The translations under genes and the position numbers were made by a program. A DNA stretch of 64,000 nucleotides, taken from NCBI GenBank assembly GCA_038087875.1, contig JAXLNO010004831.1, forward strand, positions 62,001-126,000, given 5' to 3'. This DNA is from Malacoraja senta. Lineage: Eukaryota. Below the pieces are notes generated by a model. That model was not told the origin of the DNA, did no database searches, and saw nothing but the letters and a program-made list of their open reading frames with translations. The number at the start of each line of letters is the position of its first letter. Within the stretch, counting starts at the first letter, position 1. Positions 2,877 to 64,000 of the stretch are shown here, piece after piece.

Positions 2877-3186
2877 AAGCCTATCCCACTGTACGAGGTA
2901 ATTCAAGAGCTCTCCCGAGTTTAAAAAAAAATTAAACTCGTGGTAAGCACGTAGAATGTACGTAGCGGGTACGTCGGAGCTCGGGAAGTCTCCTAGCGGC
3001 TCGTAACGCTAACGGCAGGTACTTGGGAAACGCGGTAAGCTCGTGAAGACTCGTGAAGATTTTTCAACATGTTGAAAAAAGTCCACGAGAGCCCCAAGTG
3101 CCTACGACCGGCAATTACCGTAATTCTCCGAGTTCAAATCAGGGGAAACTCGGGAGAACTCGCTCGTACAGTGGGACAGGGCCTTT
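2877..3186. mobile_element. MITE with TIRs related to the Harbinger-type family
   Basis: GCCTATCCCACTGTACGAG ... CTCGTACAGTGGGACAGGGC inverted ends, CpG-rich noncoding interior of ~310 bp. Confidence 0.7.
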
Positions 3187-3231
3187 AAGCTGTGTCTGCG
3201 TTGTCCAAGCACACACTCTCAGGGCAGAATT

Positions 3232-3940: not shown

Positions 3941-4965
3941 TAAGAAAGAACTGCAGATGCTGGAAAAATCCAAGGTAGACAAAAATGCTGGAGAAACTCA
4001 GCGGTGAGGCATCATCTATGGAGCAAAGGAATAGGTGACGTTTTGGGTCGAGACCCTTCTTCAGACTGATGTGGGGGTGGGGGGGGCGGGAAGAAGAAAG
4101 GAAGAGGTGGAGATAGTAGGCTGTGGGAGAGCTTCGAAGGGGATGGGGAAGGAGGGAGAAAGCAAAGACTACCTGAAAATGGAGGTCAATGTTCATACCG
4201 CTGGGGTGTAAACTACCCAAGCGAAAAATGATATGCTGCTCCTCCAATTGCGGAGGGTCTTACTCTGGCGTGGAGGAGACCCAGGAAAGAAAGGTCGGAT
4301 TCTGAATGGGAGGGGGAGTTGAAGTGCTGAGCCACCGGGAGATCAGGTTGGTTAATGCGGACTGAGCGGAGGTGTTGGGCGAAGCGATCGCCAAGCCTGC
4401 GCTTGGTCTCACCGATGTAGAGCAGTTGACACCTAGAGCAGCGGATGCAATAGATGAGGTTGGAGGAGGGGCAGGTGAACCTCTGCCTCACTTGGAAAGA
4501 CTGCTTAGGCCCTTGGATGGAGTCAAGGGGGGAGATAAAGCGACAAGTGTAGCATTTCCTGCGGTTGCAAGGGAAAGTGCCAGGGGAGGGGAAGGTTAGG
4601 GAATGGGGCTTCTTCTCTTCGACTATAGATGAGGCTCTCACCAGGGTATCTTCTATATCTCGTTGCTCCGCTCTCAATCCCCATCCCCCCACTCGTGACA
4701 AGTCCCCCTTGTCCTCACATTCCACCCTACCAGCCGTCACATACAACAGATAATCCTCCAACATATTCGCCACCTCCAACGGGATCCCATCACTGGCCAC
4801 ATCTTCTCATCTTTCAGCTTTCTGCAGAGACTGCTCCCTCTGTAACTCCCTGGTCAATTTGTCCCTTCCCACCCAAGCCACCCCCTCCCCTGGTACTTTC
4901 CCTTGCCACTGCAGGAAATGCTACACTTGTCGCTTTACCTCCCCCCTTAACTCCATCCAAGGACC
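3941..4965 (-). mobile_element. Penelope-like element 3' part (GIY-YIG endonuclease) with terminal repeat and an inverted segment
   Basis: ORF 4213-4800: NLIYCIRCSRCQLLYIGETKRRLGDRFAQH..VAQHF. 4600-4965 is the same family on the plus strand. Confidence 0.88.
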
Positions 4966-5764
4966 TAGGCATGCCATGCTATCCAAACAGATTAGATATA
5001 CCATACACAGATATAATCAATTAAAAGGGGAATAATATCATGCAGCATAACGATCTCAGCATTGTAGCGCATCAGTTCCAGTGAGAAAGACCAATGATCT
5101 CGGTGGATAGACGTAAATCATACTTACCATAACCTACAGAAAAACTGTTCAGAAGCCAGATAACAGAGGGGAACAAGCTGTCACTGAGGCTGGTGGTACG
5201 TGCCTTCAATCTTCTGGACCTTGTGCCAGACGGGAGCCAAACCTATCCATGCCTTTCATAATTTTGCATACTTCTATCAGGGCTCCCCTCAACTAATTGG
5301 AGCAGGAAACCAATGTAGGAACTCAGTTTTGGCAATGATACAAAAATAGATGAAATGGCACGGTTTAATGAGGAAAGTATGATTTTACAACAGGATATAG
5401 ATAGCTTGAGTGATTAGTCAAAACCTGGCTAATGTGTTTAATGTGGGAAACTGTGAGGTCATGCTGAAGATAGACACAAAATGCTGGAGTAACTCAGCAG
5501 GACAGGCAGCATCTCTAGATAGAAGGAATGGGTGACGTTTCAGGTCGAGACCCATTTTCAGACTGCAGAACTCTCGTTGGAGAGAGGAGGAGAACCTCTT
5601 CAAAGTAGGCATACCTTGAGGCGATTTCTCAGTGGAGAAGCCAAATTGTGTAGGAAGGAACTGCAAATGCTGCCTCACACTGAAGATAGACACAAAATGC
5701 TGGAGTAACTTAGCAGGACAAGCAGCATCTCTAGGTAGAATTGGTAATGTTTCGAGTCATGCTC

Positions 5765-15454: not shown

Positions 15455-18400
15455 GCAAATAGAAAAGGGGAAACAGGCTTAGATATAAAGAATAACATTT
15501 ATAGCAGTTCCAATGTAGGAAAATGCTTCAATGAGATTCGTAAGAATATTATTCTGTAACATTTTACTTCGAGCAGTATAAAGGCATGACATGACAATTA
15601 GCAAAATAAACATTTAAGGTGCATCTTAAAGGAAGAATAAGAGGTAGTGATATTTAGAGAGCAATTCTATGACTTAGGCCTGCTCTTCAGATGAAATACT
15701 TAAATTTGTGAATAATCAGGAAGTTATACTGCCCGGTTCATCGTGGGTTCTGACCTCACCACCATCGAAGGGATCCACACGAGGCGCTGCCTCAAAAAAG
15801 AAGGCAACATCATCCCCCTGGCCACGCTTTCATTACCTCCCACCATGGGGAAGAAAGTATAGGTGTTTGAAAACCATGACCTCCAGGTTCAAGAATAGCT
15901 TCTTCCCAACTATCACGCACGTGAACAATACACAACGCTAACCTCAACTGTGAAATTGTATGGACTGTATGCATGCCGAGGGAGGAGCAGCGTAGGAAGG
16001 AACCGCAGATGCTGGTTTAAACCGAAGATAGACATAAAATGCTGGAGTAACTCAGCGGGTCCGACAGCGACTCTGGAGAAAAGGAATAGGTAGCGTTTCA
16101 GGTCGAGACCATTCTTCAGACTGATAGTCAGGGGAAAGGGAAACGAGAGATACAGGGGGTGATATAGAGAGATATAAGAACAAATGATTGAAAGATTTGC
16201 TTTGAATGAAAGAGCTGTTGGTCTTACATATTTAAATACAATGATCAGAATTTAAAATCTGAATATTTTTCAATCAGAAAGATGATGGGTGAATGGGATG
16301 GAGCAAGTTAGCCCAATGATGACAAAGTCTGAAGAAGGGCCTCAATCTGAAACATCACCCATTCCTTCTCTCTGGAGATTCTGCCTGTCCCACTGAGTTA
16401 TTCCAGCATTTTGTGTCTATCGCTATGTGCTGGAGTAACTCAGCTGGTCAGGCAGCATCTCCGGAGAACGTGGCTAGATGACGTTTAGGGTAAACACCCT
16501 TCCACAGGGTGAAGAAGGGGTCTTGACCCGAATCATCTATCCATCATCACATATCCATGATCTCCAGGGATGCTGCCGGACCCACTAAGGTGCTCCAGCA
16601 CTTTGTGTCTTTTTGTGAACCAACATTTGTAGTTCCTTGTTTCTACAGTGTAAATTGACTGTCATTTGTAGGTAAGTGATAGAATCTGGAGAGAGATGAT
16701 GGGAATTTGCAGAGAATAAGAATGGGTTGGTCAAGAGCAAGAGTTTAATTGTCATCTGTTCTGGCAATGGAACAATGACATTCTTATACACATATTAAAT
16801 ATACAACAATCAATGGTAAAATAAATTACTATTAGTTATACTAGGTAACCAGACCATAACAGTGGAAAAACAAAACATCCTTACTGCAACCAAAATAAAG
16901 TTATTGCAGATCAGAGTTGTTGAGGTAAGGTTGTGGTTAGTGTTGTGCAGTGTTTAAATGCCTGCTGCTCATAAGAAAAAAGCTGCTCTTAAACCTGGAG
17001 CTAACAGTTCTCATGCTCTCTAACCTCAGAGGCAGTTGATTGGTTCAACGGTATTTTATTTGTGGCAAGTACCGAGGTACAGTGAAATTCATTTTTGTAT
17101 ACAGTTTAGTACAAGTATCACTATATATAAGCCCTTAGATACGTCTGAGATAAGCATCGCAGATACAGTACAAGTGTATAGCAGTAGTATGCTGAGACAG
17201 TATACAGTGTCGCCAGTTTATGGTGCCATATCCAAGTCCCTCAAGTTGTAAGTGAGGGTTCTTGGCCTGACCATGAGGCCCATTGTCCTGGTGTTTTGCA
17301 GGGTTGACCTGACCAAGCGAAGCTGTGGTGTCCTCTACTGCTGCAGGGTGCAACTGGTCCATGCGCCCGGCCTCTTGGAGCAGCGCCTGGAACAGCCAAG
17401 CCCCAGGCTGCGGCAGGGCCTCCAGCGCCCACTCCACTGTTGAGGCCGTGCATTCCCTCCCGCAGCCAGTCTGCCTATAAGCCATCCATCTGACTCCTTC
17501 CACTCTGGGCGGGCGAGCTGGGCCTTCCAGGTGGGTCCTCCATCCTTGGTCCACAGCGAGCAAGAACTCGGTCCATGATGGATGGGCCAGATCTTCCGGG
17601 CGAATTCCTGGTCCAGGGTGGCCGGCCCTGAGAGTATGGCCAGGGTGGTGTGGGTCTCTGATGATATTAGCTGTCTTTCTGAGGCAGCACCTCCTGTAGA
17701 TCCATGGTGGGATGGAATGGTATGGAATGAGTGCTTCATGGTCAGAGTGGACTGTCGGCTGAAGGTTCTGTTTGTGTGTCTCTGTGACTATATGTGTGGA
17801 GAATGCTTCAAAAGAGTAGGTGAAGGGGCATTCTAAATGATGGGATGCACATATCATTGTAAACGGGGCCCTCAAAGTATTGATCTGTAAAATGCTGAAT
17901 CTGCATTTTATTGTAGGGGACTAGAGTTTAATGGTAGCCAATCCACATAAACACTTGTCTCGTCTATGAAGAGTTTTGCAGACTGCTCCAATTACAATAA
18001 ATTAATATATAACGAGTGGGATACTAGAAGATACATTCCTTTTATCCATAGATGCTGCTTGTTCCACTGCGTTACTCCAGTATTTTGTCTCTATCTTTGG
18101 TGTAAGCCAGCATCTGCAGTGCCTTCCTACACAGACACAAGAAGGATCCCAACAATGGGTTCTGTTTGTATGGAGTTGATACGTTCTCCCTGTGACCGCT
18201 CGGGTTTCCTCTGGGTGCTCAGAGGGCGGTGGAGGCTGGTTCTCTGGATACTTTCAAGAAAGAGCTGGATTGGGCTCTTAAAGATAGTGGAGTCAGGGGA
18301 TATGGGGAGAAGGCAGGAACGGGGTACTGATTGGGGATGATCAGCCATGATCATATTGAATGGCGGTGCTGGCTCGGGGCCAAATGGCCTACTCCTGCAC

Positions 18401-23070: not shown

Positions 23071-23631
23071 AGGAGAAAACAAGAAGCATATTAAGCTGCA
23101 GGAAGTGTGGGGGAGGGAGAATGTCTTTCAATGATAGACACAGAAAGCTGGAGTAACTCAGCGGGACAGGCAGCATCTCTGGAGAAAAGGAATGGGTGAT
23201 GTTTCGGGTCGAGACCCCTTTTCAGACTTTACAAGCCTTATCTGGTAGAATTTAATGAGATGGACATCTGTTTGTGGTCGAATGCATTATCTGAAAGCTG
23301 AATGCAAATTGTACTGTTAAGGCTTTACAATACGTCATTGGTTAAAATGTGCATGGATTGAGCCTATGGGCTTAATTGTCCTCCTGCTTTGAAGGAAAGC
23401 TCACAGCATGTCTCAATTGCATGTCAACCTAGTATCATAAAAACAACTACTGTAGGAACTAAGGTGGTAGACGAACATCTTTGTAAGAAGAAACTGCAGA
23501 TGCTGGTTTACACTGAAGATAGACACAAAATGCTGGAGTAACTCAGTGGGTCATGCAGCATTTCTGGCAAAAAGAAATAGGTGACATTTCAGGTTGAGAC
23601 CCTTCCTCACATCTTCAAGAGACAAGAGTGT

Positions 23632-28612: not shown

Positions 28613-29303
28613 CAGTGAGTCCCTCAGCACGTACTCCTGCAGTCTGGAATGGACAGATGATGTTTTGGGTCAGACGCTTCTTCAGACTGATTGTAATAGA
28701 AAGCTGAAAAAGAGATGTGGGGCTGGGACAAAGCCTGGCAAATGATACAGGTGATAAGACACAAAAAGCTGGAGTAACTCAGCGGAACAGGCAACATCTC
28801 TGGAGAGAAGGAATGGGTGATGTTTCGGGTCGAGACCCTTCTTCAGACCCTTTGTCACCTTTTCACCTCTAGCCGTTGCCACTTACTCCACCCGTCTATT
28901 TATCAAAATCCGTTCTCTAGTCGCACCAGCTTCTCGTTTTCACCCAACAAATAGCTTACAATGGCCTGTTTCCTTTATCATCGTTACTTTTTTGCATATC
29001 TTTCATTCATTGTTCTTTATCTCTCTACATCATTTTCTATATCTCTTGTTTCCCTTATCCCCAACTAGTCTGAAGAAGAATCTCGACCTGAAAAGTCACC
29101 CATTCCTTCTCTCCAGAGATGCTGCCTGTCCCACTGAGTTACTCCAGCTTTTTATGTCTTATCACCTGTATTACTTGCCAGGCTTTGTCCCAGCCCCACA
29201 TCTCCTTTTCAGCTTTCTATTACAATCAGTCTGAAGAAGCGTATGACCCAAAACATCATCTGTCCATTCCAGACTGCAGGAGTACGTGCTGAGGGACTCA
29301 CTG
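28613..29303. repeat. Long inverted repeat (~236-bp arms, ~220-bp spacer) built from Penelope terminal repeats
   Basis: 28613-28848 is the reverse complement of 29068-29303 at roughly 90% identity (by eye), including the non-PLE end CAGTGAGTCCCTCAGCACGTACTCCTGCAGTCTG. Confidence 0.9.
28815..28850 (-). ncRNA. Minimal type I hammerhead ribozyme motif in a Penelope terminal repeat
   Basis: Minus strand GGGU-CUGAAGA-A-GGGUC-UC-GACCC-GAAA-C-AUC-ACCC: CUGANGA and GAAA core, 5-bp stem II, 4-bp stem I, NUH triplet AUC, loopless stem III. Confidence 0.7.
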
Positions 29304-30895: not shown

Positions 30896-31340
30896 GAAGG
30901 ATCTGCAGATGCTGGTTTAAACCGAAGAAAGACACAACAAGCTGGAGTAACTCAGTGGGACAGGCAGCATCACTGGAGAGAAGGAATAGGTTATATTTCG
31001 GGTCGAGACCTTTTCGGGTTGAGTCCCTTCTTCAGGAAGGATCTACAGATGCTGGTTTACACCGAAGACAGATGTAAAATGCTAGAGTAACTCAGTGGGA
31101 CAGGCAGCATCACTGGAGAGAAGGAATGGGTGACATTTCGGGTCAACATCCTTCTTCAGGAAGGATTAACAGATGTTGGTTTACACCGAAGACAGACATA
31201 AAATGCTGGAGTAACTCAGCAGGACAGGCAGCATCTTTGGAGGGAAGGAATGAGTGACGTTTCTAAACATCATCCATTCCTTCTCTCCAGAAATACTGCC
31301 TGCCCTGCTGAGTTACTCCAGCATTTTGTGTCTATCTTTG
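30896..31340. repeat. Three tandem Penelope terminal-repeat units followed by an inverted partial unit
   Basis: Units start at 30896, 31036 and 31160 (GAAGGAT..CAGATG(C/T)TGGTTTA..GAGTAACTCAG..); reverse-orientation copy at ~31265-31340. Confidence 0.85.
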
Positions 31341-39575: not shown

Positions 39576-40223
39576 CATTTCGGCTATTTGTGGTGTTTCT
39601 TGAAAACACGAAGACGAGAGAATGTAAAGGATCTGCAGAACAACTGAGAGACTGCAGAAAGCAGCTTGAAAAGAAGGCTCTTCATCTATAAAACATAATT
39701 ATTTTTTATTCAGCTATCATTGTTTGTAGAGTTTCTTATTGGAATGAAAACATCATCCAAGTTTGAACCTTCCTTATTACGCCTGGTCCCAGGGGCATGG
39801 TTGGCATTAGCTCATTACCTTCATCCTAATAAAGGGTTGGTGTTCACAGTTGTGCCTAGGTTTTTATCAATTATAACCTTGAGTTCACAAACTGTTCTTT
39901 GTCTCTGGGCTAAAGTTCACAGACTCTCCTTTTCAAGGAGTGAGCAGTTTTAAGCAAACTGACCAGCAAATCCTTACAAATTCCATCACCCCCCCCCCCC
40001 CCACTTTGATTCATCAACCAATGCCAGAGTGAATGAATCATCTAAGTAAAGGGGCCTGTCCCACATACGTGTCCTTGGCCGCGATGGTCCGGGATGGTCC
40101 GGCGAAGGTCGGGCGCGATTACATGCGTACGCACAGCCGTCTGGAGCACGTGACATAATTTGAAGATTGACACAAAGCTGGAGTAACTCAGCGGGATCGG
40201 CAGCATCTCTGGAGAGAAGGAAT

Positions 40224-40257
40224 GGTTGACGTTTCGTGTCGAGACTCTTCTTCAGTC
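40224..40257 (-). ncRNA. Minimal hammerhead ribozyme motif (second well-preserved core)
   Basis: Minus strand CUGAAGA-A-GAGUC-UC-GACAC-GAAA-C-GUC-AAC: intact core, palindromic ACGU stem III, one stem II mismatch. Confidence 0.6.
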
Positions 40258-40486
40258 TGAAAAGAAGGGTCTTGACCCGAAACATCACCCATTGCTTCTC
40301 TCCAGAGATGCTGCCGGTCCCGCTGAGTTACTCCTGCATTTCGTGTCTATCTTCAATTTTCTTGGCCCCGCTCTTTTTTTTTTTTTTTTTTCCGTAAATG
40401 TTTTTTTTAATTAGATTTTTAAACAAATGTACAATTTACAAGGAAGGGTAGAAAGCTCACACAATTTAAAAAACATTTACACAAAA

Positions 40487-43400
40487 TTAACAAATTAAAA
40501 TATTAACATTTTTATCTATAATATATTCAACCTCCTGCGGTGACCAGCGTTCACAGAAGGCCTCCACAGTCCCCGTGAACACCGCGTGTTCCCTCTCTAG
40601 GGATACGCGGGCACGGACGTAACCCCGGAAAAGGGGCAGGCAGCCGACCGCTGTGCGGCCATCGACCGCCCGCTGCCTGGACCCGCGAATGGCCATCTTG
40701 GCCAGGCCCAGGAGCAGTCCGACAGGGAGACCCCCTCCTCCCTCCCGACCCTCCCCCCTCTGTACCGGGTGCCCATAGATTAATAGCGTTGGACTAAAAT
40801 GTAGCCAAAACTTGAGGAGCAGCCCTTTCAGATACTCGAACAGGGGCTGCAACCTCTCGCACTCTATATACACGTGGAACACAGTCTCTTCCTCACCGCA
40901 GAAATGACACGCAGGGGAAGAGTCCGTGAACCGGCTCAAGTACCTATTACAGGCCACGGCTTTGTGCAAAACTCTCCACCCCGGGTCCCCGATGTAAAGG
41001 GGGAGGACTCCCTTGTAGAGAGACCTCCACTGGGGACCGCTCCCCTCGTCAGGTGGTAACACGGACCGCCAGGGTGTGTCTGAACGGAAGACGAGGGCGA
41101 GGAAGTGGAGAGTGTGCAAGAGCAGCCTGTACAGTACGCGCCTCTCCGCGCCACGGAATGGCACACTGGGCATCTCAGAAAGGCGGCTCATGTTGCATGG
41201 GGCCGGCTCTCGGGGAGGGTCCCGGGCCATGGGCCCTATGAACAATTCCGACTGAGCGGGGGTAAGCTCGTCCGGAATCGCTCCATGCACACGCCTCTCC
41301 TCGACACCCACCGTCACAGCCACGACACCCCCCTCCCCCTGAGGAGCAGGGCCCTGGCTGAAGGTGACCAACTTCCTGGCCTTCAGGAGTTCACGGTAAA
41401 AGCCAGGCAACTCCCGCCTAGCGCGTCGACTCATGCCCGCTACCGGGAGCCGGGAGCACCCCTGAAGGCACCGTCCCTGACGGAAAAAGTACGTCGCCAG
41501 CACGTGCCATTTAGGAGGGTAGTCCGAGTAGACGTACCTCCGCAGGGTCCTGAGTCGGTGAGCCGCCACCTGGGTATGAATACAGACCAGCGCCTGACCA
41601 CCCTCCTCCAACGGGAGACTCAGAACCCCAGCAGAGACCCAGTGGTTCCTCTCCCCCCAGAAGAAGTTGACCAATCTCCTCTGTAACATGGTTATAAAAT
41701 AGGAGGATGGGACCATAGTGGCCATCCGGTACCACAGCAGAGAGGCCACCAGCTGGTTTATAACTACATCCGTGCCCCGGTAAGAGAGCACACCAAGTAG
41801 GCCTGACCAACGTCCCAGCCGGGCGACCACTTTCGCCTCCAGCTCCTGCCAGTTCGCCGGCCACCCCTCCTCAGCGGGACTCAGGTAGACCCCCAGATAG
41901 AGGAGGTGCGTGGTACTCCACGCAAAACCTGCCATCTCCTCCAGCAGGGAGTCCACCTGCCACCCACCCATCAAGAGACCAGAACACTTCCCCCAGTTGA
42001 TCCTGGCGGAAGATGCAGCCGAGAAAACCTGCTGGCACTCACGCATCCTCCGCAGGTCACCAGGGTCGGTGAACATCAGAAGGACATCATCGGCGTAGGC
42101 CGAGAGAACCACCTCCATCCCCGGCCCCGGTAAAGCCAGGCCTGTCAACCGCGAAGGCACAGGAAAGGCTCGACACAGATGGAATACAGCTGGCCGGACA
42201 TGGGACATCCCTGACGAACCCCCCTCCCAAAGGGAATGGGGGCCAACAAAGAGCCGTTGACCTTAACAAGGCATTCTGCAGCAGTATATAAAAGTCGGAC
42301 CCAGGCCACAAAATGCGGTCCCAATCCGAACGCCTGCAGAGTCCCAAGAAGGTAGTCGTGCTCCACCCTGTCAAACGCCTTCTCCTGGTCGAGGGGGAGA
42401 AAGGCGACCGACTGACCAGCCCCCTGGGACAGATGGATCAGGTCCCGGAGCAGATGGATATTGTCCTGGATGGACCGGCCCGGGACTGCGTACGACTGGT
42501 CAGGGTGGATCACCTGGGACAGCAAGGGACCCAGGCGATTCGCCAATGCCCGTGCAAAGACTTTATAGTCCGTGCTGAGGAGAGAGACCGGGCGCCAGTT
42601 CTTCAAAAGGCGAAGATCGCCCTTCTTGGGCAGCAGGACAACAACTGCCCTGCGCCCAAGAGAAAGGCATCTCCCCGGTCGCCAGGTTCTCCCCCAAGAC
42701 CTTCATTTAGTCGCCCCCCAGGACATCCCAGAAGGCTCTAAGGTACTCCACAGTCAGCCCATCCAGCCCTGGAGACTTGCCCCTCCTAAGCTGGTGCAGG
42801 GCAACAGTCAACTCCTCCAGAGTTAGGGGATCATCCAGGTGTTCAGCCACATCATTGCACACAGCGGGTAAGCCCTCCACTGGACTTCTTGCGCCTCCCC
42901 ACTCGATGTGCCAGCCGAGAACAGAGTCCTGTAGAACGACCGAACTGAGGCACCAATGCTCTCTGGATCTGTGACAGAGGAACCATCCTCCGCAAGCAAC
43001 TCTACAAGCTGCCTGCTGGCTCCTCGCCCCTTCTCCAGAGAAAAAAAAAGGGGGAGGCGCGGTCCAGGTCGTGCAACATCTGGACCCGCGACCTCACATA
43101 CGCACCCCGGGACCTCCTAAGCTGCAAGTCCCTCAGTGCTCCCTTCTTCTCCTGGTATTCCTCCCACTCACACGAAGCCCCACCAGTCTGATCCAGGCGA
43201 GCCTCCGAGTCGAGCAACTCTCTCTCAAGCCGTCCGATCTCGGATTCCCGCCCCTTGGTCGACCCCCTCGCATAGTCCTGGCAAAACTGACGGACGTAGA
43301 CCTTCCCCACGTCCCACCACTGCCTTAGGGAAAGGAAACGCCGCTGCCTCTCTCTCCACCTCGCCCAGAACTGCCTGAATGAATCCCGGAATCGGCAATC

Positions 43401-44158
43401 CTCCAACAGCTGGCTATTATAATGCCAGTACGCGGACCCTGCCCGTGCGCGCGCTGGGATAAAGTCCACTCGCACCAGGCAATGGTCCGAGCATGGCGCC
43501 GGCTGCATGGAGGCCGCCGAAACACAGGAGACATAGGCCTTGGACACGTATAAATGATCAATACGGGAACCACCACCCTCAAACCTGTACGAGAAGGCGT
43601 TAGAGTCAGGATGGAAATTCCGCCATGCATCTACCAGCTCAAAAGAGTCCACCATCTCCCTCAAAGTCTTCACTGCTCCCGGGTCACGCTGAACGCCAGA
43701 GCGATCTCTTGTCTCGAGGGCACAATTAAAATCTCCCCCAAGGAAAACACACTCCCCACGGTCGATAGTGTTCAACAACGTGGTCACTTCCCTTGTTAAG
43801 CGCGTCTGCATTGCGCCGATCTTGGAGGCGTACACATTAACGAAGTGTAATGGCACACCATCCAAGCGCACGGCCAGATACAGCAAACGGCCTGGTACAA
43901 CCCTCTGCACTTTGAGGATCTCCGGCTGGAAAGACGGGGCCAACAGGAAGGCTACTCCACTCGATTTGGAGCTGAGATGACTCATGTAGACCCCCCTTCC
44001 CACTCCAGGAGCCATGTGGGTTCATCACTAGCCACAGTGTGTGTTTCCTGCAGGAAGCTCACCGCATACCTCCCGTCCCTGAGTACTGAGAGATGGTGAA
44101 ACCTACGGAGAGACCCCCTGCCCCCATTGATATTCAGGCTGGCTATAGTGAGCTTCAT
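40487..44158 (-). pseudogene. Tx1 ORF2 (AP endonuclease + reverse transcriptase), disrupted
   Basis: MKLTIASLNING (ATG overlaps the ORF1 TGA), FLQETH, GGDFNC, RIDHLY, SDH (APE). KSPGLDG, NWRPVSLL, LDQEKAFDRV, GVRQGCPMS, AYADD (RT). Several frameshifts and at least one in-frame stop near 42710. Confidence 0.9.
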
Positions 44159-46255
44159 TTTGAAAGTACACTAGATCTTTTACCCGTCCCCGGTGATGGA
44201 TTGGAGCCTACCCTACCCTTCTTCCCTCTCTTTAGGGCCTTAAAAAGCTCTTGGAACTGGCGCCTCTCATTTCTTACTAGCCCCGCCTCATTCCCCTTCT
44301 TCTGAAGGATGGCATGAATGGACTGCATGGGCGCCATCAGGTCCGACCAGCGGTCAACAGCCAAATCCACCTTGTTCCTACTCCCTCTAGTTTCCTTTAA
44401 GAACTTCCGAAGTTCCCAGACTTCGACAAGTCGAGACACGGGGCCGCGGGTGGAGCAGTCGGTCAACTCACTGTCAACGGACTCCGCGTACCCTTCCTCC
44501 TCGCACTCAATGTCCGAGCCCGAGTCCAGAAGGTTACTACTCTCAGCCGCCTCGCTCACCCCTCCCTGTGAGGTGGGCATTCCAGCCACATCACACAGTC
44601 CCTCCTCTGTCACCATCCCACCCCCAGGATCAGTGACAGGGGCAGGTACCAGTGCCTCTGACCGCGGCAAACTATCTGACAATTTGCCAGTCTCCTGCAC
44701 GCTCCCATCGCCCTCTGTAACCGGATTGGGAACAGTGAAGTCAGAGCAAGTCTCCGGGCCTTGCTGTAAGCGGGTCTGTCTGGAGTCCGACCTAAGGACA
44801 CGATCCAAAATGATCTTGCCCTCCTCCGCACCCAGGGTATCCGCCCCTGCACCGTCACCCAGAGAGTCCCCGTCCCCCACCACCAGGTGAATCACCCCAC
44901 TGTGGCCCTCAGGGGCCGATGTTACTGGAGTCTCCCCTGCTCCCTGAACCAGTGGGGCATCACACCCCTCAACTGGGCTTGTAGCCTCAACGGGGAGCTC
45001 ATGTTGGGGACCCACCCCCTCACCCAAGTCCCCCCCTTCAGGCTGCCCCTGGTCATCCACTAAGCTAGCAGACGTGTTTTCTGGGGGAACAGCCCCCAAG
45101 AGCAATATATCTCCACTCTCAGGTGGTCCCAGACCTACAGAGGCATCCTCCCCCTCAGAGGAAACGTGCCCTGGGTACCCCACCTCAACAGGAGGGGAAG
45201 GCTCCCCTTCAGGTTGCCCCTGAACTTCAGTGCCCTTCTCTGTATCGGAGGACCCATGCCTCCTCCTCTTCGTAGCACTGGCGTACGGTGGTACGGTGAG
45301 CTCCATTGCAGAAGCCTCTACCTCCACACTACCGTCTATCTCAGAGGCTAGCATGAAATTATCTGCTGCCTGGGGTCCCGCTTGGAGGTGATCATCTTCT
45401 AGGGGATCAGCCTGGAGATGTTTCTTCTTTTTCTTGACTTTCCTCCCCTGCTGATGCTCCCAAACCTTCCCATCCACCCTACGCACTTCTCCGGCATCCA
45501 CCGCCACAGGTACGGGACATGGGGGTGGTGGGGGGATAGGGGTTGGGGGTAGGGGAGTAAAGCCTTCACGGGCCACCGTGTTAAAACCAGCAGCCCCAGA
45601 TGGGCCAGTTGTGCTTTCCCGTGCCATCGTGGTGGAACTGGCAGCCCGGGTCCTGGGACAATTCTTGCGAAAATGCCCCACCTTTTTGCAAGCGTGACAA
45701 CGCACTTGGCCCGCATTTCAGAACACGCGATAGGAGAAATCATCCACCTCCACCTCAAAACTCCCCTCCGTGTCCGTCCCCTGTGCCAACTGTATATACA
45801 CGCGACGCTTGAACGTATATATATGCTGCATCTCAGGATCGTCAAACCTGTACAACAGTTTGGTGAGCCCTGACCGCACCTCCCCCAGCTTCCTTACATG
45901 TGGGAGCAGGAGCGCATCCGGAACAAAAGTGGGAACGTTGGACAGAATGACCGGCAAAACGGGACCCCCCCATGGGACCACCGCCGCAAAACCCCCCTGC
46001 TGTTACCCCCCTTTCCAGAGCCAGAGCCACCGCCTGTTCAGTCTTTAGTAGAACCACAACCTTCCCACTGACCACCGCGCCCGAGACTATGGCTTTCTTG
46101 CCAACAGTCTCACCCAACGCATCTAGAAAGGCCTTTAAGGGCAGGTTGCTCTGTATGTACATTTTTACACCATATGTGCGCCCCATCAACTCGTGGCCCT
46201 CAGTCTCGGAGACTGCCGACCGTGCAACAGCTGCATAACTCTGAGGGGCCGCCAT
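44155..46255 (-). pseudogene. Tx1 ORF1 (gag-like, CHACKKVGHFRKNC zinc knuckle), frameshifted
   Basis: Starts MAAPQSYAAVAR at 46255 and continues through ORF-track segments 45718-45981 and 44155-45705. C-X2-C-X4-H-X4-C knuckle followed by a long low-complexity acidic/proline region. Confidence 0.85.
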
Positions 46256-47569
46256 CTTTAGGGCGTGGCACAACACACAAAGTACCAGTAGTTTATATCC
46301 AAAGCAGTCTTTCTGCTGTTGCTGCACCTCCACTCTTTTGCAGCAGTTAAATAGTCTTGTGAAGGCTTTCTTGGTAAGCAACAGAAGCAGTCTCCTCCTG
46401 ATAAGATAGGAATGTCCGTGCCAATCCTCCCCGTCGTCAAAAATGGAGCTTCCTTATGCTTCTTCCCCAGGCCTCCGGCGCCTCCCCGGCTTCAACGAAA
46501 TCCAAGGCACTGTTGCCGTTCTTACCCAGCCCACCTGGACCGGGCAAGTCGGTGTAGGAGGGAGCTTTCCGATGTTACTGACCACAAACACCACTCTAGA
46601 CTCAGCTCCCACTCGTTCAAGTGCAACTTGGCCTTCCGCCAGCCACTGCCGCTCCTACGACTTTACAGATACACGGACAAATCCTCCCTAATTAGAGGAA
46701 TCTTTGAACAAAGAAAGTCTCTGCAGATCGACAAAACTCTGAACTGCAAAGTCTGACTGCTTTTGTTTCTCCCCGCCAAACAAAACCTTCCGAAAAGTTC
46801 ATCAAATCCTCCCCGCCAGCAGAACAGCTCCTCACCTGGCCCCGCTCTGGGAGTAGAAGTGGGGGCGGATCTGGACCACAACGGCCGTGAGCCCCAGGCC
46901 GAGCTCGGCGATCGTTTGCCTGCTTCTGCTGTTGTTGGAGGTGAGACGTTGCGTCGCGCCAGGGCCTTGGGCCTGTCCCACTTTGGCCGTCAGTTCCGCG
47001 ACAGGCCGTTGGCGCGCGAAGATTTCGTTCACTACAAAATTATTGGAGCCCCGCGCAATGTCGCGCACAACTACATACCCCTCCGCGCTTCTCAGTGAGA
47101 CCGGTCCCGCGCGGCCATACAGTGTCCGTGAGCCTCAACGCGACCACGAGGTCACATAATTTGTGTGCCAAGGACAAGTAAGTGGGACAGGCCCTTAAAA
47201 ATACAAAGGAAGGGTAGCGCAGCTACACATCACTGGATATCTTTAACCTGTTCAATCACTGGGTATCTTTAACCTGTTCAATGCCAACGCCGAGTACACT
47301 AGGGATCATGACCAATAGTGAAAAATAAACTTGGCAGTGAACAGCTTAATGGTCTCCATATTTTATAGAAAGCCTTCAATGCCCATGAGGGGTGAGCCTT
47401 ATTATATCTATGTTTCTCTAAATATAGGAAGCACTTTTGTGGTAAAAGATGGGGCAGCTCGGGCCTCGAAAAGATCCAACCTTATGTGTAGCTTTACATT
47501 TGTTTATATGCAATAAGCAAAAAGAACACAATAGAAGATAAAACATGATAATAACTATAAGCAAAGCCA

Positions 47570-62600: not shown

Positions 62601-64000
62601 ACAAACCTTTGCTCATATTTTGAAACATCTGGCGTTAATAAAACTAAACCTAATGAAGTAAGTTCCATGACGCAAGTTACAGATTCAGCAACGAAAAATA
62701 TAACTGCCTGACAAACAACGATCGTAGTAGTTTGATTCCAAGTATGCTGCACTAACCTACACAAATGCTCACTTTTGAAGATTCCCTCGAACAATGCACA
62801 ACTAAGGAATCTGATGTTTCACTCTGAAGACTGTTGACATACTCCAGAACTTAATTTCCAACCTATCTATGTATCATCAGCAATCTAGGCTACAGCGCCA
62901 CCAGTCCCTTCATCTGCTCTTAATACCAACGATAAGTAGTTCACTTTCTTGCATTGATTCCCAACCTGCAGTTGCAGTTTCCCAACCAGAACACTCCTTT
63001 AAGACAACTCTCTGCTTGCTCTTAATTGTTTTTTCCATTCATGCTAATTATTACCCCCAATGTCATAAGCCATGTGCCTTTGCATCACTTGATCAGATAT
63101 CTTATGAAAATCCAGATATTGTGCGACATCTGGTGGTCAGGCCACTTATTGCTAGAACCCTCGTCAGGGGAGCTGGGACTATCACGTGAGTGACAGGGTT
63201 TTGGTGGGAGTTGGTGATGAATCAGTCGCCAGTCAACTGGTGTGCCCGATAACAACGGCAGGAACTTTGCTCAAGTCCTTACTAAACGCGAGTGTGCCAA
63301 AACTGTATTTCTTTAAAAAACATTGATTTGTTCACGACGTTTGGATCTCTACAATATACTGTATTTCTTTTGTTTCTCATTCCAATTTTGTTACCTATTC
63401 TGCTTTTCCATCATTTTGTTTTTGAATTTTAGACTATGTACACCTGCTGCTCGAATATACATTGTCTACGGGGTTCCTGTTGCATTTTCAAAGAATTCTA
63501 ATCAATTTCTCAAACAAAGTTTGAAGAAGGGTCCCAAAACGAAACATCGCCTGTCCATGTGTAAGAAGAAACTGCAAATGCTGGTTTACACCGAAGATGG
63601 ACACAAATTACTGGAATAACTCAGCTGGTCAGCCAGCATCTCTGGAGAAAAGGAATAGGTGATGAATCCATGTTCACCAGAGATGCTGCCTGTTCCGCTG
63701 AGTTACTCCAGCATTTTGTGTCTATTATGTATATTCTTTCCACTGACTGGTTAGCACGTAACAAAAGCTTTTCACTGTACCTCAATACATGTGACAATAA
63801 ACTAAACTAAAGCTTTTGTGTAAATCAGTATCTGCATCTCTTTCTTTCTACAATTTTCCTGTTAATGCCCTGTTAATGCACTTTATAGTTTTGTTATTAC
63901 TTAAATGTTCTGCATTATTGAAAGGAATCCAGCATTTTCCCCAAAACAAATGTTAGTTTATATAGGGTTAAAGCTTTCTGCTTTCAATTCACCTTCTTTC

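Follow-up and report, generated by a model that had tools for sequence, protein, structure and literature searches.

A Tx1-type LINE, complete in extent, lies inside a Harbinger-like MITE in the 64-kb stretch of skate DNA analysed here (the window). This non-LTR retrotransposon occupies 6,462 bp of the minus strand (40375-46836) and sits within a 674-bp element bounded by TIRs. Its nesting in a TIR-bounded, TWA-flanked, high-copy element is confirmed. The MITE was there before the LINE, its empty site is found in other contigs, it is abundant in four skate-like organisms, and the LINE copy is dead. The locus is best explained, quite probably, by an old MITE into which a Tx1 LINE later inserted by target-primed reverse transcription and then decayed, the site putatively being recognised by the endonuclease of the LINE. 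One locus together with indirect signs, among them the way in which close relatives are arranged in other contigs, suggests that the LINE family as a whole is likely to be specific for this MITE site. If its endonuclease does recognise the site, the family would be found mainly in this MITE, much as Tx1L is in Tx1D and Tx1-9_AMi is in Harbinger.

The nested structure can be followed along the plus strand. A TAA (40047-40049), read directly and identical to the TAA at 47196-47198, borders the left arm of the MITE (40050-40374, plus strand), which includes the left TIR (40050-40079) and was delimited by the TIR pair and by a 28/30 match to the empty site. The left arm ends in TGGCCCCGCTCT (40363-40374), the 3′-side copy of the LINE target-site duplication. 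This 12-mer recurs exactly at 46837-46848 as the 5′-side copy, and these are its only two exact occurrences in the window. The left copy adjoins a run of 17 T residues (40375-40391), read directly as the 17-nt poly(A) tail of the minus-strand LINE, and the right copy adjoins the LINE 5′ end. Between them, all on the minus strand, lie a 95-nt 3′ UTR (40392-40486, the interval between the ORF2 stop and the poly(A)), a broken ORF2 (40487-44160, placed by Pfam domains and a frame map against the proteins of the batoid contig L001), a broken ORF1 (44155-46255, placed by its ORF pieces and a frame change relative to the L001 ORF1) and a 581-nt 5′ UTR (46256-46836, the interval that separates the ORF1 start codon from the 5′-side duplication). 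The right arm of the MITE (46849-47195, plus strand) was delimited by the TIR pair and contig depth, includes the right TIR (47166-47195) and is followed by the second TAA, which was read directly and is also indicated by the flanks of other copies. The insertion point of the LINE is thus 325 bp from one end of the MITE and 347 bp from the other.

Empty sites and sequence depth were taken from contigs of four skate-like organisms, one run each. In each of the four runs, between 59 and 85 contigs cross the insertion site without the LINE. They depart from the window exactly at 46837 and, continuing leftward, enter a consensus that matches window positions 40333-40362 at 28 of 30 nucleotides. 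The MITE sequence rebuilt by removing the LINE and one copy of the duplication therefore really exists. The preliminary description had proposed both a 12-bp duplication around a Tx1 LINE and a genuine MITE beneath it; the first is borne out by the perfect 12-mer at both joints with poly(A) beside one copy, and the second by these crossing contigs. Summed over contigs, the MITE right arm was covered 50-400 times as deeply as the 5′ half of the LINE across the four runs, and in all four position 46793, within the 5′ UTR, was as deep as the remainder of that half. With as many as three mismatches allowed, the 20-nt empty-site motif was not matched elsewhere in the window (0 expected), and the empty-site 20-mer did not match any viral contig.

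The outer inverted repeat of the MITE, which begins AGGGCCTGTCCCAC, spans 28 nt at 93% identity (26/28; 40052-40079 and 47167-47194), or 30 nt with one 1-nt indel if the leading A is counted. An earlier reading of 27-bp TIRs with TAA duplications was accordingly right about the TAA, which borders both ends, and wrong about the length. A TIR-like 15-mer also occurs internally in the right arm (46969-46983). The flanks of other MITE copies in runs X3 and X12 are unrelated to the window beyond either 47196 (followed by TA) or 47198, with 46-62 contigs in each class, which fits duplications of TTA or TAA, that is, of the Harbinger-type TWA. The element shows these features of a PIF/Harbinger MITE: a 3-bp TWA duplication, TIRs, short length, no coding sequence and high copy number. 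No autonomous Harbinger partner was found within the 64-kb window. Approximately 200 bp of the left arm belongs to a different, very abundant interspersed repeat of ~95 bp, which is present there as an inverted pair and has about 27 further loci in the window. The pair (40160-40356) forms a near-perfect 197-nt palindrome with 79-nt arms at 89% identity and a DNA fold of -89.4 kcal/mol (z -19). A plant miRNA identity for this palindrome was considered and rejected, the Rfam match being sub-threshold only and taken as chance.

The order of domains in ORF2 is an APE endonuclease (about 43482-44158), a reverse transcriptase (about 41888-42603) and a zinc-binding motif (40853-41035), with Pfam matches to Exo_endo_phos (7.5e-10), RVT_1 (3.4e-27) and zf-RVT (9e-5). 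ORF1 carries a CX2CX4HX4C zinc knuckle, read directly at its 45705 end at the start of a 516-aa piece; the corresponding zf-CCHC Pfam match is weak (E 0.008). The stop of ORF1 overlaps the ATG of ORF2, and there are no long direct terminal repeats in the LINE. Against the L001 proteins, ORF2 contains five frame breaks (near 43990, 43040, 42870, 42655 and 42152), so that its N-terminal APE piece lies in a shifted frame, and other LINE copies in contigs show indel differences at the places of the ORF2 breaks. At least one further break, near 45990, is seen in ORF1 when compared with the L001 ORF1. Taken together, these breaks mean that the copy is dead and that function is unlikely. The term "full-length" used previously consequently holds for the extent of the element, which is complete, and fails for its reading frames.

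An N-terminal APE followed by RT, the A17 tail, the target-site duplication, the lack of LTRs and a CCHC ORF1 place the element in the L1 superfamily. Its assignment to the Tx1 type, which had been made from the window before any search, is probable on the evidence of protein similarity: in addition to the APE, RT and zinc motifs and the CCHC ORF1, the nearest named relatives are TX1-labelled proteins from fish (Takifugu, Oryzias). The RT core shares 50% identity with a TX1-labelled cluster (164 bits, versus 80 bits for human L1 ORF2p), and the best relatives of ORF2 with solved structures are human L1 ORF2p and L1-EN. When the 573-aa RT piece was used in a word search, no match exceeded 77% identity, and a search of all libraries returned nothing above 81%. 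Outside the batoids, the best protein matches were sea-turtle LINE fragments. Skates and sea turtles were considered as partners in horizontal transfer, an idea that was dropped because the turtle locus is similar in nucleotides over only 112 bp and shows 45-62% amino-acid identity.

These observations suggest the following sequence of events. A now old copy of the abundant, non-coding MITE would first have inserted at a TAA. The LINE would later have entered it by target-primed reverse transcription, with the APE endonuclease nicking the plus strand of the window between ...CGCTCT and GGGAGT and the freed 3′ end serving as the primer from which cDNA was made on the poly(A). The opposite strand would have been nicked 12 bp away, which would account for the 12-bp duplication, and the product would have been a complete LINE copy of 6.46 kb. 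Subsequent decay introduced the frame breaks in both ORFs along with many private substitutions.

Such a nested arrangement could also arise by chance, if a LINE without strong sequence preference had landed in one of many thousands of MITE copies. The MITE is a large target, as the depth of its arm relative to the LINE in all four runs indicates, and its great abundance means that some chance LINE insertions are to be expected. Moreover, the locus was singled out because it is nested, which introduces a selection effect. Only a single filled copy has been read, and searches for more came back empty: no other LINE copy was recovered by exact-protein look-ups with four window ORFs, by a word search in which the queries were the ORFs of 72 and 111 aa crossing the 5′ joint, or by scanning contigs from metagenomes and genomes for protein patterns, and an exact 22-mer from the LINE 5′ end had no match in the same two sets of contigs. 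However, the window holds just one copy of the MITE, amounting to ~1% of its length. The first-strand nick site is G/C-rich, unlike the TTTT/A consensus of the promiscuous L1 endonuclease (PMC1950540). In addition, a contig from organism C, at a depth of 58 like the other LINE contigs of that run, joins the LINE at 46735 to the MITE at 46866 with 6 nt between them; this second joint has the same orientation and falls about 17 bp from the site in the window, on one contig with 29 nt on its shorter side. Target specificity is also frequent among Tx1 families, Harbinger elements being among their targets (PMC4494074), where a family is counted as target-specific if more than 20% of its flanks lie in one repeat family (PMC4494074). 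Chance nesting is on balance unlikely, and insertion by an endonuclease that probably recognises the MITE site is preferred.

Two other accounts concern how the composite came to be where it is. The LINE-filled MITE, 7.1 kb in all, might have been moved here as a unit by a Harbinger transposase, in which case the TAA would belong to the composite. The TIRs still match at 26 of 28 positions and the TAA is clean on both sides. However, positive evidence for such a move is lacking, insertion of the MITE first and the LINE later is simpler and accounts for everything, and the arms of the MITE seem old (they depart from the empty-site consensus at 2 of 30 positions, and the TIRs carry mismatches and an indel); we consider this account very improbable. 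A mis-join of the LINE between two MITE halves during assembly merits mention since both partners are repeats and therefore prone to mis-assembly. It can nevertheless be practically dismissed: the exact 12-bp duplication at both joints, with poly(A) beside one and the LINE 5′ end beside the other, is the signature of retrotransposition and not of collapse, and the window contains no N runs. A more far-reaching reading, in which a Tx1 lineage is tied to one 12-bp MITE site across at least four skate species and its TIR-bounded composites are moved by Harbinger transposase as well, is very improbable. Were it true, a retrotransposon would have gained a DNA-based means of spreading besides its own. 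The lineage might possibly be the same as that of the Harbinger-targeting Tx1-9_AMi of archosaurs, on the basis that sea-turtle LINEs are its closest non-batoid relatives.

The precedent originally invoked for the skate locus is indeed published (Tx1L in Tx1D; PMC4494074, PMC1950540). Tx1L and Tx2L of Xenopus laevis reside inside the non-autonomous DNA transposons Tx1D and Tx2D (Garrett 1989 and Christensen 2000, cited in PMC4494074, PMC1950540 and PMC6719617). Likened by description, the skate locus resembles these in having an APE/RT LINE at a defined site in a TIR-bounded, non-autonomous DNA transposon, the two forming a composite. As with Tx1L, the endonuclease appears to nick at a site that is not T-rich, which is here deduced from sequence. 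However, Tx1D is of the piggyBac type (PMC4494074) whereas the skate host element has Harbinger-type TWA duplications, and the site specificity of Tx1L was shown biochemically whereas the LINE described here, from a cartilaginous fish, is known from its sequence. In the American alligator, Tx1-9_AMi prefers to insert into Harbinger DNA transposons at a distance of about 300 bp from their end (Kojima 2015, PMC4494074), to which the skate insertion, at 325 and 347 bp from the ends of a Harbinger-like element, is again similar by description, albeit in a different host lineage. Tx1-Mar families target Mariner-N4_AMi (PMC4494074) and, together with Keno, Kibi and Koshi, they show a habit of the clade that the skate LINE would share, that of aiming at repeated sequence such as DNA transposons, snRNA genes or microsatellites (PMC4494074); their targets differ from the skate MITE.

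Since a Harbinger-targeting Tx1 is already published in the form of Tx1-9_AMi (PMC4494074), the skate nesting is of a known kind, and it raises no new question. If the family is site-specific, it would provide a cartilaginous-fish case of a Tx1 element living inside another transposon, as in a refuge where host genes are spared, and a second example of Harbinger targeting beside that of the alligator. It would then also aid the annotation of skate repeats and comparisons of how new APE endonuclease specificities evolve.

Contigs L001 to L008, fetched from protein matches, represent other families or other species. Within L001, full-length relatives of the LINE are arranged head to tail; one of the junctions contains a (GA)n run, which gives this contig a more Kibi-like look. 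Contig L004 holds a related LINE copy, 88% identical in nucleotides, that is associated with a fixed 15-bp duplication. The tandem copies of L001 and the duplication in L004 appear, from their sequences, to show Tx1-like targeting habits in close relatives of the skate LINE.

The 12-mer TGGCCCCGCTCT occurs exactly twice in the window, at 40363-40374 and 46837-46848. The left copy is directly followed by a run of 17 T residues (40375-40391), which is a minus-strand poly(A), and the right copy adjoins the final base of the 5′ UTR of the LINE, a Tx1-type element of 6,462 bp on the minus strand (40375-46836). An outer inverted repeat of 28 nt (93%; 40052-40079 and 47167-47194), or of 30 nt with one indel when the leading A is included, marks the ends of the host MITE (40050-47195), and TAA flanks it on either side (40047-40049 and 47196-47198). 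With the 12-bp duplication, poly(A), inverted ends and TAA flanks all legible, the preliminary description of a LINE nested in a MITE is essentially right, and the nested structure is real and clean. Even with three mismatches allowed, the 20-nt empty-site motif had no second match within the window (expected 0). Logan contigs from four runs, of four differently labelled organisms, were compared over 41301-47300. In each run, 59-85 contigs matched the right arm and the 12-mer and then departed leftwards at 46837, with the LINE absent; the consensus beyond this point equals window 40333-40362 at 28 of 30 positions. Since contigs bypassing the LINE were found in every run, empty sites are common, and the earlier proposal that removing the LINE at its 12-bp duplication restores the host element is borne out by the joined sequence itself.

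Without the LINE and one duplicate, the host element measures 674 bp. In its left arm, ~200 bp (40160-40356) are taken up by two inverted copies of a separate ~95-bp repeat, and the remainder of the MITE occurs once in the window. In two of the runs (X3 and X12), 46-62 contigs per class became unrelated after 47196 (then TA) or 47198, as expected if other MITE copies have TTA or TAA flanks. Moreover, the summed depth of the right arm was ~50-400 times that of the 5′ half of the LINE across the four runs. The host element thus matches a Harbinger-type MITE in its target site duplication, TIRs, size and copy number. The right arm additionally contains a 15-nt internal copy of the TIR (46969-46983). 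Shorter deletion forms of the MITE exist, since 46906 is joined to 47165 in contigs of two other species. About 30 bp past the right end, at 47229-47280, is a tandem duplication of a 26-bp unit (96% identity).

The LINE comprises a 5′ UTR (46836-46256), ORF1 (46255 to about 44155), ORF2 (44158-40487), a 95-nt 3′ UTR and the A17 tail, all on the minus strand. ORF1 bears a canonical CX2CX4HX4C knuckle and its stop overlaps the ORF2 ATG. Pfam matches were to an APE endonuclease, a reverse transcriptase (RT) and a C-terminal zinc-binding motif. Among proteins of solved structure, the best matches were human L1 ORF2p and L1-EN; the closest named proteins bear a TX1 label (Takifugu, Oryzias). The RT core is 50% identical to the TX1-labelled Oryzias cluster (164 bits, versus 80 bits for human L1), and on these protein comparisons the LINE likely belongs to the Tx1 clade. 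It had been described as full-length, which holds for its extent, from 5′ UTR through poly(A), but not for its coding capacity. Relative to the reading frames of a relative on ENA contig L001, the frame changes near 45990 in ORF1 and near 43990, 43040, 42870, 42655 and 42152 in ORF2. Contigs of other copies show small indels against the window LINE at these same positions, and, compared with nearly all contigs from the run closest to it, the window LINE has 18 or more private substitutions. The window LINE is dead; its family was active fairly recently.

Close relatives came from a batoid-derived ENA sample (ERZ25070917), which carries the same ~95-bp repeat. On L001 (1-14867), full-length copies (at least 2.5) follow one another head to tail every 6751 bp, with 76% nucleotide identity to the window ORF2. 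One junction consists of poly(A), a (GA)n run and the 5′ end; at the next, poly(A) lies directly on the same 5′ end. The arrangement suggests a Tx1 family that either targets microsatellites in the manner of Kibi or stacks on itself. A second contig of the sample, L004 (2650-7100), holds three 5′-truncated tails with 88% nucleotide identity to window 40490-41378. The first is bounded by a 15-bp direct repeat (3175-3189 and 4193-4207), and in units 2 and 3 flank plus tail are repeated with a period of ~1.5 kb. Both relatives show the behaviour of targeted Tx1 elements, which indirectly favours site specificity of the window LINE's family.

From the duplication, the first-strand nick falls on the plus strand between CGCTCT and GGGAGT; this site is rich in G/C and differs from the TTTT/A cut by promiscuous L1 (PMC1950540). 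Among the contigs listed, one from organism C joins LINE 46735 to MITE 46866 with six letters between, the shorter side spanning just 29 nt, at a depth resembling that of other LINE contigs of that run. This is a second, different LINE-MITE junction, in the same orientation and ~17 bp from the window site. In all runs, the LINE was covered as deeply at 44 nt from the joint as across the remainder of its 5′ half, so the predominant copies are full-length ones that have this 5′ end. The databases searched contained no other copy of the family, the best matches being fragments 77-81% identical. No match was found for ORFs spanning the LINE/MITE 5′ joint (word search), four window ORFs (exact look-ups), protein patterns and the LINE 5′-end 22-mer (metagenome and genome contigs) or the empty-site 20-mer (viral contigs). 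When the nick site, second joint, 5′ ends and relatives are weighed against a selection effect and the abundance of the MITE, the LINE family is probably site-specific.

It had also been suggested that a Harbinger transposase could move the whole composite. Its TIRs are fairly well preserved, but nothing supports such movement: a MITE that inserted first and a LINE that entered later account for the locus fully. Published cases include Tx1L in the piggyBac-type Tx1D, Tx1-Mar, which targets Mariner-N4_AMi, and Tx1-9_AMi, which enters Harbinger transposons ~300 bp from their end (PMC4494074). Thus insertion of Tx1 elements into DNA transposons, Harbinger included, is already known, and the skate LINE is a further case. 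Transposable elements that target others have been reviewed (PMC6719617), and no account of Tx1 targeting in skates was found in the literature searched.

Further LINE arrays were seen elsewhere. In Lepidochelys olivacea (OZ223115.1, ~54.07 Mb; contig L003, 10815-57990), 17 tandem copies of a 2.74-kb 5′-truncated LINE are mostly 99.5-99.9% alike, each poly(A) directly abutting the next copy, and the array is annotated as a single 1370-aa 'gene'. The skate ORF2 is closer to this array protein (45-62% identity) than to TX1-labelled teleost proteins (36-50%). A similar 2.5-kb array is present on ENA contig P0001. Logan contigs from three runs (L005, L006 and L007) share an old 5′-truncated LINE fragment with the same upstream flank, at 85-86% nucleotide identity to window 40600-41041; they probably represent a single locus, orthologous or transcribed.

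The ~95-bp repeat is found at ~27 window loci besides the MITE pair (e.g. 5465-5561, 23133-23225 and 28761-28846), or ~1 per 2.4 kb, and at 89-91% identity on L004. The two head-to-head copies in the MITE form a near-perfect 197-nt hairpin (computed fold -89 kcal/mol), and copies of the repeat are also paired in inverted orientation at 16326-16467, 31188-31338 and 63593-63722.
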